Made by a program: the position numbers and the translations under genes. The notes under the pieces were generated by a model. That model did not search any database. It was not told the origin of the DNA and saw only the letters and a list, made by a program, of their open reading frames with translations. This document shows, piece by piece, positions 38,693-40,507 of a stretch of 64,000 bases of DNA (position 1 is its first letter; every line of letters begins with the position of its first letter). Location of the stretch: sequence record NC_019407.1; one strand, written 5' to 3'.

Positions 38693-38781
38693 TGGAGCTT
38701 CGGGAGGGACTCGAACCCTCATAGGTGTTCCCACCAGCAGAGATTTGCAATCCCGCGCCTAACCTCTCAGTCCACCGAAGC
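38693..38781 (-). tRNA. tRNA-Cys(GCA) with long variable arm
   Basis: GCTTCGG/CCGAAGC acceptor, U73, encoded CCA, loop TT-GCA-AA, T arm GAGGG-TTCGAGT-CCCTC, extra GGTG-GGAA-CACC stem. Confidence 0.9.
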
Positions 38782-38784
38782 ACA

Positions 38785-38965
38785 AAAGGACCTCGACGCC
38801 CGAAGGCCCGAGGTCCGATCCGTAACCAGGGGAGGGCCGTAGCTGTCCCCTGACCCTGAACGACAGGTGGCGGGCTTGGTCGTCATCCCGTCAGGCTCGC
38901 GGCGCCGCTCGCCTGAACCGCCGATATGCCACGAGGGCAGTGATCCGCAGGTCCCCATAAATAGC
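38785..38965 (-). ncRNA. Candidate ~180-nt structured RNA between the GOLLD-like terminator and tRNA-Cys
   Basis: Non-coding; CAGGC/GCCTG, GTGGC/GCCAC and CAGGGG/CCCCTG stems; ends in a U-tailed hairpin. Confidence 0.4.
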
Positions 38966-39000
38966 AAAAAGGCCACGATCCGCGAGGACCGTGGCCTTTT
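38966..39000. terminator. Intrinsic terminator
   Basis: AAAAAGGCCACG...CGTGGCCTTTT. Confidence 0.88.
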
Positions 39001-39004
39001 CGTT

Positions 39005-39878
39005 TTCCGATGGGCTGAGACTACACCCATCAGCAATCCCGCTTCGAGGATTATTCCCCAGGTGCGACCCCAGGTATTCCCTCGACGTCCACCAGACCCC
39101 TTGCGGTAGTCCAGTCCGAGATCATCGCCGCCGTTCTTGCGCACCCCGAAGGGATTGCGGGTCTGGCGTTTGACCCATCATGGCGAACTACTCGACAGTT
39201 CCTTCCCCGCTGGGCTTGCGACCCACTCACCGGCGCTAACCGGCTGACGAAGCTCTTCCTATCGACACCTCGCGGGCTTGCGACCCTTGAGATGACTCCG
39301 TTACCCGAAGGCCGGAGCATTTGGCGACTTACGTCCGCCACTGGACCAGTCTTTGCGTTTTTCATCGAAGCGGGGATTGAACCCGCGACCGACAGCTTAA
39401 GAGGCTGTTGCACTACCACTGTGCTATTCGCAAACCCACCAAGACGTGCTGGTCCAGTTGTTCCCAGAGCTTTTGACCCCAGAAATGCAACACGCCTCAT
39501 ATCTTTCGCCTTGCGGGCTACTCGACTGCTCTTCAGGACCCCGTCTCCCCCAACCTTTCGGCCAGGATGCCCAGCACCCCTCGAACTGAAGCAAAGCTCT
39601 TCACCGCGAAGTGTCGAACCCTGCAACCCAAACGGTTATCCGTACTCCCTAGACGCGCTTGCACGGGATAGTCCGCTTGCGACGGACTGGCGGTTAAAGC
39701 CTCGGAGTTACCCCGGCCCCGCCTTGTCTCCCACGGTCTTCAGGTCTATCCCCTTTTGCAAGAGGCGGCCAGCTTCCCAGCCCGGACCCGTCGGCTTCCT
39801 CTGTCCTCTTGCGAGGTCGGGCGGCCTATGGGAGACCGTCCCTGTCACCCCGTCGCCGGGGCTTTCGTCAGAAGCGAC
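39005..39878 (-). ncRNA. GOLLD-like giant structured RNA (~870 nt)
   Basis: Promoter and terminator bounded; at least 8 GNRA and 2 UUCG hairpins; GTCGAGTAG twice, one in a loop-E-like AGUA/GAA context; internal tRNA module; next to phage tRNAs. Family call is from recalled GOLLD features, not a search. Confidence 0.72.
39362..39433 (-). tRNA. tRNA-Lys(CTT)-like module embedded in the GOLLD-like RNA; degenerate acceptor stem, no CCA
   Basis: D arm GCAC/GTGC, ACAGC-CTCTTAA-GCTGT, GCGGG-TTCAATC-CCCGC; only about 4-5 acceptor pairs. Confidence 0.8.
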
Positions 39879-39884
39879 GATGAC

Positions 39885-39913
39885 GTTCTAGCGACAGCCC
39901 ACGTCGTCGTCAA
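39885..39913 (-). promoter_or_regulatory. Sigma73-type promoter of the GOLLD-like RNA
   Basis: TTGACG-15 nt-GCTAGAAC. Confidence 0.82.
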
Positions 39914-39969
39914 CGACTTTTTCCGTCTCGATGTCGAATTTTTTCGACAGTCGTGGATGACGACAGTGC

Positions 39970-39998
39970 TTGACATTCTCGTAAGCCCATGCTAGGTG
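39970..39998 (+). promoter_or_regulatory. Sigma73-type promoter of the tmRNA/tRNA unit (divergent)
   Basis: TTGACA-15 nt-GCTAGGT. Confidence 0.72.
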
Positions 39999-40003
39999 TC
40001 GGA

Positions 40004-40375
40004 AATCGTTGTAATTCGGACAACGGAACTGGCGGCAAGACAGGGGTGCGAATCCCCTCGCCTCCACCATCGACGCCCGGCGCTGGGAGTACGCGACTCC
40101 TGGGCAGGGTGCGTTACCCTGGCGGGCTGCGGCCCGAGCCAAGGGGTAGCCGGGCGTCGTTGATGGGGGCGACTAGCTTTCGATTGGCGCTCGGGACTGA
40201 AAGACGCAACGGTGGGTGACCTCCACATCGGCTTGCCGGTGATCGGGTCAGGCAACAGTAAATGTCGCCGACAATGACAACGACGTCGTGGCTTTCGCCT
40301 CGGCTCGTGAAGCCATCGCCGCCTAATAAGCGGTAGAGGAGCCCGCCGGGAGCTTGGCAACAGAATCCCGGCAAC
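40004..40375 (+). ncRNA. ssrA: Two-piece (circularly permuted) alphaproteobacterial-type tmRNA
   Basis: Acceptor piece ends GAC-AGGGG-TGCGAAT-CCCCT-CGCCTCC-A-CCA (40069). Intervening segment closed by CGACGCCCGGC/GCCGGGCGTCG. Coding piece starts GGGGGCG (40165), giving G3:U70. Tag 40267-40326 reads ADNDNDVVAFASAREAIAA with tandem TAA. Confidence 0.93.
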
Positions 40376-40507
40376 CCCCTTTCGCAGGCGGGAACACCAA
40401 CAGGCGATCTGTCGGGCGACCGATTTCCGATCCGTGTTCCCGTCTTCGAAAGGTGGTCGGGCCTACCCTCTTGGTGTGCTATCCAAGGGTCTGGCCACTT
40501 TACAGAA

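Follow-up and report, generated by a model that had tools for sequence, protein, structure and literature searches.

A GOLLD RNA gene in the Caulobacter phage CcrMagneto with an embedded tRNA-like module whose anticodon loop appears to be kept or replaced as a block

The 64-kb stretch of DNA analysed here (the window) carries on its minus strand a structured unit of about 0.9 kb, which an earlier note based on the letters of the sequence had attributed to GOLLD, or to a GOLLD-like relative, in an alphaproteobacterial phage. GOLLD, a giant RNA whose family was reportedly described by Weinberg et al. in 2009, has had no known function since then; that it builds RNA-only cages has been known since 2025. 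The locus raises the question of whether this unit is a true GOLLD RNA, how far it extends, and what the tRNA-like element lodged within it might do.

The window matches the genome of CcrMagneto (JX100812; hereafter Magneto) at 100% identity. Magneto is a phiCbK-like phage of Caulobacter crescentus, a model alphaproteobacterium, in agreement with the proposed alphaproteobacterial phage, and the same region is found in 12 other phiCbK-like phages at 94-99.6% identity. An Rfam scan of the whole window placed the GOLLD family (RF02032) at 39498..39012 on the minus strand with 169.4 bits (E 8.2e-46), above the curated gathering score of 150 bits. The match is untruncated, spanning model positions 1-416 of 416 with few non-canonical pairs flagged, and it provides the full-length cmsearch hit by which the GOLLD identification was to be checked. 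Sister phages score 165-170 bits, and full-length matches above the gathering score were also obtained in Mesorhizobium, Sinorhizobium and Roseobacter phages. Taken with the Caulobacter phage source, the tRNA-gene setting and the presence of a tRNA-like element in the variable linker, the full-length match supports the identification of the minus-strand RNA as a true GOLLD, beyond a merely GOLLD-like one. We put the probability that the ~0.9 kb unit is the GOLLD RNA gene of Magneto, including a role in translation support that is itself held at low confidence, at about 90%.

The 3' part of the gene is present in the published record. The Infernal alignment of the family's 3' domains that Kretsch et al. 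(Nature 2025, PMC12286853) give as Supplementary File 3 contains the CcrMagneto row JX100812.1:c101498-101012, which is exactly window 39498..39012 (window coordinates equal JX100812 record coordinates minus 62,000), together with rows for phiCbK, Karma, Swift, Ccr phages and other alphaproteobacterial phages; the 5' domain lies outside that alignment. The locus is hence catalogued but unremarked: no discussion of GOLLD in Caulobacter phages was found in the literature searched, and GenBank annotates only the tRNA at the Magneto locus, leaving the GOLLD unannotated. Since the family is known and the locus stands in a published alignment, novelty is low and no new kind of element is involved. 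What is added here is a model of the whole gene, which takes in the promoter, the 5' domain and the terminator.

From its signals, the gene is predicted to form a single transcription unit of ~0.9 kb, running from a consensus host RpoD promoter to a strong intrinsic terminator, with the following parts.

39908..39913, minus strand: -35 box TTGACG, kept in phiCbK, Swift and BL57 and fitting the Caulobacter RpoD element TTGaCgS
39885..39892, minus strand: -10 box GCTAGAAC, separated from the -35 box by a 15-nt spacer
39499..39881, minus strand: GOLLD 5' domain, 383 nt, outside the Rfam model, with homologues detected by nhmmer
39012..39498, minus strand: conserved GOLLD 3' domain, 487 nt, covered by the RF02032 match
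38965..39002, minus strand: intrinsic terminator, a 17-pair stem with 9 G-C pairs followed by CUAUUUAU and a U-rich tail

Searching both strands for TTGACN{11,17}GCTANAWC returned a single match in the 64 kb, the GOLLD promoter, against 0.03 expected by chance, and this promoter fits the Caulobacter RpoD consensus TTGaCgS / GCtANAWC (PMC8144410). The promoter TTGACG-15-GCTAGAAC and the terminator that had been read from the sequence are thus both in place, the former at 39913..39885 (minus strand) as the sole consensus match in the window and the latter as a stem with a T run at 39002..38965. Transcription is predicted to start at ~39876-39879 (minus strand); near-identity among the phages begins at 39881, where the conservation boundary of BL57 also falls. 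In BL57 both promoter boxes are kept, with GCTACAAC as the -10 box, while the spacer and the upstream sequence have diverged, and the terminator is kept in related phages. The full unit would accordingly run from ~39879 to ~38960 on the minus strand, so that the strand given previously stands and the length of about 870 nt is revised to roughly 920 nt with the terminator. Between the 5' and 3' domains, neither a promoter nor a terminator was detected. The published phiCbK RNA-seq study (PMC10688885) does not discuss non-coding RNAs.

Several of the small motifs reported earlier recur in this gene model. Counting GNRA tetraloops with at least three closing pairs gave 8 in the RNA against a mean of 2.4 in 500 dinucleotide shuffles (sd 1.5, maximum 8), in line with the claim of at least eight such hairpins, and several CGCAA pentaloops occur besides. 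Both UUCG hairpins were located, at 39309 and 39150, and the terminal GAUGGG...CCCAUC helix proved to be the final helix of the Rfam GOLLD model. For the proposed GGCGGAC-GUAA-GUCGCC hairpin, the Rfam model has a competing long-range helix that pairs AGUGGCGGAC with GUUCGCCAUG. Within the 3' domain, Magneto shares with the RF02032 family the UCAAAAG loop, the GAGUA motif, the terminal GUAGUCUCAG hairpin and a variable linker able to carry a tRNA, and differs from the model in having a 27-nt insert in place of 5 nt and an extra hairpin, CCGG-UUAGCG-CCGG, whose GC-containing loop stands at the place of the model's GCAA hairpin. Three features of this domain bear on the proposed working of the RNA.

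39470..39476, minus strand: A-rich UCAAAAG loop, matching the model consensus and capping the first long hairpin (39498..39441)
39361..39434, minus strand: tRNA-like module, annotated as tRNA-Lys with anticodon CUU (ARAGORN; Rfam tRNA 56.1 bits)
39403..39397, minus strand: anticodon loop of the tRNA-like module, CUCUUAA in Magneto

The conserved A residues of the loop called L14 in the GOLLD literature make an intermolecular A-minor bridge, and by analogy we infer that the UCAAAAG loop is L14. The tRNA-like module sits in the unstructured insert of the model, which corresponds to the variable linker following the first hairpin of the 3' domain.

A scan of 39499..39881 against Rfam families returned no match for the 5' domain. 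Homologues were instead assembled from distant BLAST matches and pattern scans of IMG/VR, followed by an nhmmer filter that was applied because the loose pattern CAGCACGTC-N70-100-AAAGACTG yielded mostly chance matches. The BLAST searches identified GOLLDs in Mesorhizobium, Sinorhizobium and Roseobacter/Ruegeria phages, and nhmmer recovered about 50 homologues from phages and IMG/VR, the majority of which span the 5' and 3' domains contiguously and in the same order. The alphaproteobacterial set comprised Mesorhizobium phage Cp1R7A-A1, Sinorhizobium phage Phosso, Roseobacter phage DSS3P8 and Ruegeria phage V10, and about 45 IMG/VR contigs (designated here, like the other relatives, by L numbers). 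A profile from which all Caulobacter phage sequences had been excluded matched 39626..39500 at E 3.7e-16. The 383-nt 5' domain of Magneto belongs with the 5' domains of these related phage GOLLDs, in keeping with the family layout, where a 5' domain of about 400 nt, less conserved than the 3' domain, precedes it; five hairpins can be placed in it.

39847..39862, minus strand: hairpin a, GCCCCG-GCGA-CGGGGU, placed by covariance model R1
39819..39842, minus strand: hairpin b, GGGaCGG / CCGCCC with the conserved large loop UCUCCCAUAGG, placed by R1
39805..39816, minus strand: hairpin c, CCUC-GCAA-GAGG, placed by R1, with a GNRA-capped hairpin at the same place in relatives
39596..39619, minus strand: hairpin GUUC-GA-CACU-UCGC-GGUG-AA-GAGC, obtained with RNAalifold and containing the GGTTCGA sequence
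39501..39526, minus strand: loop-E / sarcin-ricin-like hairpin GUC-GAGUA-GCC-CGCAA-GGC-GAAA-GAU, closing the 5' domain

In 16 relatives, three hairpins and the helix that closes them covary strongly over the first 90 nt of the domain: pairing is 82.7% against 58.5% in shuffles, a value reached by 0 of 500 shuffles, and 75 cells have both sides changed against 25.7 in shuffles, with slid controls giving 24-45% paired. In the same 16 relatives, the equivalent of hairpin a is 98.8% paired, with compensatory changes in all five of its pairs (5/5), and that of hairpin b is 91% paired, with compensatory changes in 4/5 pairs; hairpin b is also obtained by single-sequence folding. As the first 100 nt of Magneto were misaligned by plain MAFFT, covariance model R1, built on the 16 relatives and free of Caulobacter sequences, was used in its place. 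The sole match of R1 in the window, 39871..39789, aligns hairpins a, b and c with a modest score of 12.6 bits (E 0.26 for the window as a whole), so that the structural match of this segment to its relatives is suggestive and stops short of proof. The closing helix is shifted in Magneto with respect to the alphaproteobacterial relatives, and the middle of the domain (about 39789..39627) is variable and unalignable to theirs.

In the last third of the domain, 15 of 20 consensus pairs display compensatory changes in an alignment including Magneto. The loop-E-like CGAGUAG-CCC-GCAA-GGC-GAAAG reported at this junction (39526..39501) is kept across relatives; both of its stems covary, with both-sided changes in 6/6 pairs, and its GAGUA and GAAA strands are conserved. 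The two supposed T-loops fared differently. The GGTTCGA T-loop is ruled out, as this sequence is one strand of the covarying GUUC...GAGC helix at 39619..39596, whose inner pairs carry compensatory changes in 6-10 sequences (RNAalifold, 18 sequences including Magneto), and AGTTCGA can be placed in part, its GUUC coinciding with columns of that alignment in which a different helix covaries. The folding free energy of the 5' domain is unexceptional (MFE z-score -0.81), a measure that is uninformative in this GC-rich sequence.

The tRNA-like module has a cloverleaf with D, anticodon and T arms, and is called as tRNA-Lys(CUU) by ARAGORN, yet its Rfam tRNA match spans only model positions 4-67. A seven-pair acceptor stem is not present: pairs 4-69 to 7-66 are Watson-Crick, and these are followed by G.A at 3-70, U.U at 2-71 and U.G at 1-72. 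Conservation of the D and T arms is good throughout the clade whereas the anticodon varies, and in the tRNA body Magneto and the Mesorhizobium phage are 84.5% identical, against about 47% for their scaffolds. CUU is the commonest anticodon in the slot (at least 16 of about 50) and Lys the commonest identity; the other anticodons include UUU, UCC, UCU, CAG, UUG, AUG, GAU, UAU, UAG, CCA and UCA. Three relatives have 8-nt anticodon loops, and some slots are degenerate.

Close relatives were compared in the anticodon loop. The loop reads CUCUUAA in Magneto, Karma and Swift, CGUCCUA in phiCbK and CAUCCUA in BL57, so that a 7-nt loop with U33 and a purine at 37 is found in the first three phages but not in the last two. 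Outside the loop the module is identical among Magneto, phiCbK and BL57, and 9 of 922 positions differ between the Magneto and phiCbK RNAs, 5 of them consecutive and located in the anticodon loop (39402..39398). Block replacement of the loop between near-identical GOLLDs was observed in three lineages. L048 and L034, which are identical at 736 of 737 scaffold columns, carry the loops AUUUUGA and AUUGAUAA, respectively; and L166 and L174 share the tRNA body and differ in the loop. In an independent IMG/VR pair, 3 of 12 differences fall in the anticodon loop. Conversely, CUCUUAA is invariant (kept 7 of 7) in six contigs whose scaffolds are only 69-83% identical. The anticodon loop thus appears to be either strictly kept or replaced wholesale, an observation that may be new, and this pattern suggests that something reads the loop, the nature of the reader not being shown by the pattern.

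Two ideas that would tie the anticodon loop to the RNA itself were also considered. Magneto has CUUAAG in the loop and phiCbK CUAG, but a palindromic, self-kissing loop was rejected, as most relatives lack a palindrome there. Inspection by eye for a covarying partner of the loop within GOLLD yielded CUAGGGA at ~39650, where Magneto and phiCbK are the same and covariation is accordingly absent. Around the gene (38950-39950), shared substitutions within 1 kb support each of the three ways in which Magneto, phiCbK, Swift and BL57 can be grouped. This points to frequent recombination among phiCbK-like phages, in which both loop alleles have persisted.

The surroundings of the gene are rich in elements of the translation apparatus. 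Within 2 kb of GOLLD lie a downstream tRNA-Cys, two tRNA-Met genes and a tmRNA gene, and with the tRNA-like element in the linker they accord with the description of GOLLD RNAs as tRNA-adjacent and able to embed a tRNA.

39977..40417, plus strand: two-piece (permuted) tmRNA gene (ARAGORN; Rfam tmRNA_permuted 70.3 bits), outside the GOLLD RNA
38693-38781, minus strand: tRNA-Cys(GCA), 89 nt with an extended variable region (ARAGORN), scoring only 33.8 bits with Rfam tRNA

The tmRNA gene is transcribed divergently from GOLLD, with a weaker RpoD-like site, TTGACA-15-GCTAGGTG, at 39969..39997, and its predicted tag is VADNDNDVVAFASAREAIAA. A terminator-like hairpin (38809..38788) lies immediately upstream of the tRNA-Cys gene. 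Three unrelated contigs also carry a tmRNA within a few kb of GOLLD (L004 3124-3545, L045 9277-9725 and L041 11169-11690); tmRNA genes occur near GOLLD in four lineages, and tRNA islands flank nearly all relatives. Suppressor-type tRNAs were observed in several relatives, as tRNAs with anticodon CUA called by ARAGORN beside GOLLD (L164 4636-4710 and L026 1834-1908), as CUA read from the linker slot loop of L017, and as UCA inside the GOLLD slot (L045 7425-7495 and L030 5319-5390), which hints at stop-codon reassignment or suppression in these phages.

Among known systems, the closest structural reference points are the two GOLLD cages solved by cryo-EM, the env-38 14-mer (PDB 9MEE) and the Streptococcus agalactiae 12-mer (PDB 9L0R). 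In these structures the RNA forms protein-free, closed dihedral cages, with 5' domains as caps, 3' domains as rings and the variable linker directed into the lumen; oligomer number within the family is 10, 12 or 14. Magneto resembles both in its two-domain layout of ~0.9 kb, its phage-borne nature and its location in a tRNA island, and differs from the AT-rich solved examples in being GC-rich (59%). A sequence profile of alphaproteobacterial-type GOLLDs detected no 5'-domain similarity to env-38, of which only the last 90 nt align, and the Magneto 5' domain likewise lacks sequence-level similarity to it. Helix-by-helix equivalence with env-38 P1-P13 was not established. The env-38 sequence compared is 816 nt long instead of 833, and the published residue numbers do not map onto it. 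With the alphaproteobacterial phage GOLLDs, Magneto has in common hairpins a, b and c, the GUUCGA hairpin, the loop-E-like junction hairpin and the tRNA slot, and a tmRNA adjoins GOLLD in DSS3P8, L045 and L041 as it does in Magneto. These relatives differ in anticodon (CAG, UCU, UCA, AUG and others), and the slot is degenerate in DSS3P8. Mycobacterium and mycobacteriophage GOLLDs (PMC6582537; Morgado et al. 2020, cited in PMC12990946) are described as lying within tRNA arrays and as being of phage origin; like Magneto, they are associated with a tRNA cluster and have a tRNA or pseudo-tRNA lodged in their J13/15 linker, but they belong to another host phylum, and anticodon-loop switching is not reported for them. 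ROOL is likewise a large, ornate phage-associated RNA found near tRNAs and forming an RNA-only cage with a disordered internal linker, but its sequence and secondary structure are unrelated, and the Rfam ROOL family had no match in the window.

By analogy with the solved structures, the Magneto RNA would fold in two domains and self-assemble, protein-free, into a closed dihedral cage, its 5' domains forming the caps, its 3' domains the rings and its linker, the tRNA-like module, pointing into the lumen. Given the kept UCAAAAG loop, the hairpins retained at the bridge positions and the presence of a hairpin at the position of the model's GCAA hairpin, such a self-assembling cage is what we would infer as the best and a reasonable reading. 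The consensus host promoter implies that the gene would be transcribed by unmodified host RNA polymerase, and so probably from early infection. The RNA may be part of a phage translation-support island together with the tRNA genes and the tmRNA, a role we assign with low confidence, in which the tRNA-like module would be held or shielded by the cage, or have its release timed by it. As the anticodon loop is strictly conserved or switched as a block, it would be the part of the module that some partner reads. A stronger version, in which the loop of the caged module is the functional business end of this clade of GOLLDs, kept or switched under selection and read by a partner such as a host defence that targets tRNAs or some other factor that reads anticodons, making GOLLD a multivalent protected tRNA mimic, is offered as a decidedly speculative and rather unlikely proposal.

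The embedded element could also be a working tRNA gene, with GOLLD serving mainly as precursor or storage and RNase P and RNase Z freeing a tRNA-Lys(CUU) that decodes AAG; anticodon switches among relatives would then follow from shifts in codon demand or from roles in suppression. Both ARAGORN and Rfam call a tRNA, U33 and A37 give the Magneto loop a canonical form, full acceptor stems of 6-7 bp occur in several relatives (L164, L013), relatives present ordinary or suppressor anticodons such as UCA, and an 'inhibited storage' of embedded tRNAs has already been proposed in the GOLLD literature. Nonetheless, the Magneto acceptor stem retains only four Watson-Crick pairs before its G.A and U.U mismatches, the phiCbK and BL57 alleles combine G33 or A33 with U37, which is not tolerated in a decoding tRNA, and the 8-nt loops of three relatives argue in the same direction, as do the Mesorhizobium 'tRNA-Leu' that lacks a long variable arm, the separate normal tRNA-Lys(CUU) of phages such as L038, and the Mycobacterium embedded pseudo-tRNA, which is not detectably expressed. 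We regard a working tRNA as possible but unlikely. The persistence of two loop alleles across recombining phiCbK-like phages, and the keeping or block replacement of the loop in scaffolds that are 99.9% identical, would suit a decoy or bait, in which the cage shows up to 10-14 anticodon stem-loops that soak up or sense a host factor, such as a defence anticodon nuclease or a modification enzyme, the loop switching with its target. Lys is the commonest identity in the slot, and tRNA-Lys is a known target of anticodon nucleases. This proposal is purely inferential, access to a module enclosed in a cage would be poor, and the pattern fits any anticodon-reading partner equally well, so that we consider a decoy improbable.

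Other readings concern the unit itself. The Rfam model and the published alignment are limited to the 3' 487 nt, and the 5' part has an unremarkable MFE, as might be expected if a GOLLD 3' domain RNA were preceded by an unrelated leader or small RNA. Yet in most of the about 50 homologues the two parts adjoin each other in an unchanged order, the hairpin at their junction covaries, the search for a promoter or terminator between them was negative, and a two-domain architecture is the norm in the GOLLD family, all of which makes two independent elements very improbable. Long ORFs of 191 aa and 199 aa overlap the region on both strands, and the GenBank record of BL57 calls a hypothetical protein, BL57_146c (L005 1535-1741), inside the BL57 GOLLD 5' domain, which could be taken to indicate a protein-coding region. 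In a GC-rich genome, however, long ORFs occur in every frame; a Pfam scan of the ORFs overlapping the region returned no match, and conservation is RNA-like, with compensatory pair changes. The likelihood of a coding region is consequently close to nil, and BL57_146c is probably a spurious ORF call over structured RNA.

The gene is thus best read as that of a true GOLLD RNA, and beyond its full-length model the analysis contributes the block switching of the anticodon loop, and draws attention to GenBank records that lack a GOLLD annotation or, in the case of BL57, call an ORF within the RNA. The practical value of the finding lies in the host system, a bona fide GOLLD in phages of Caulobacter crescentus for which infection RNA-seq exists; the phiCbK-type phages and their non-pathogenic, genetically easy host answer to the tractable pair that had been anticipated. 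There, natural GOLLD alleles differ almost only in the embedded anticodon loop, and constitute a ready-made experiment. If the loop is indeed read by a partner, GOLLD would be more than a container.
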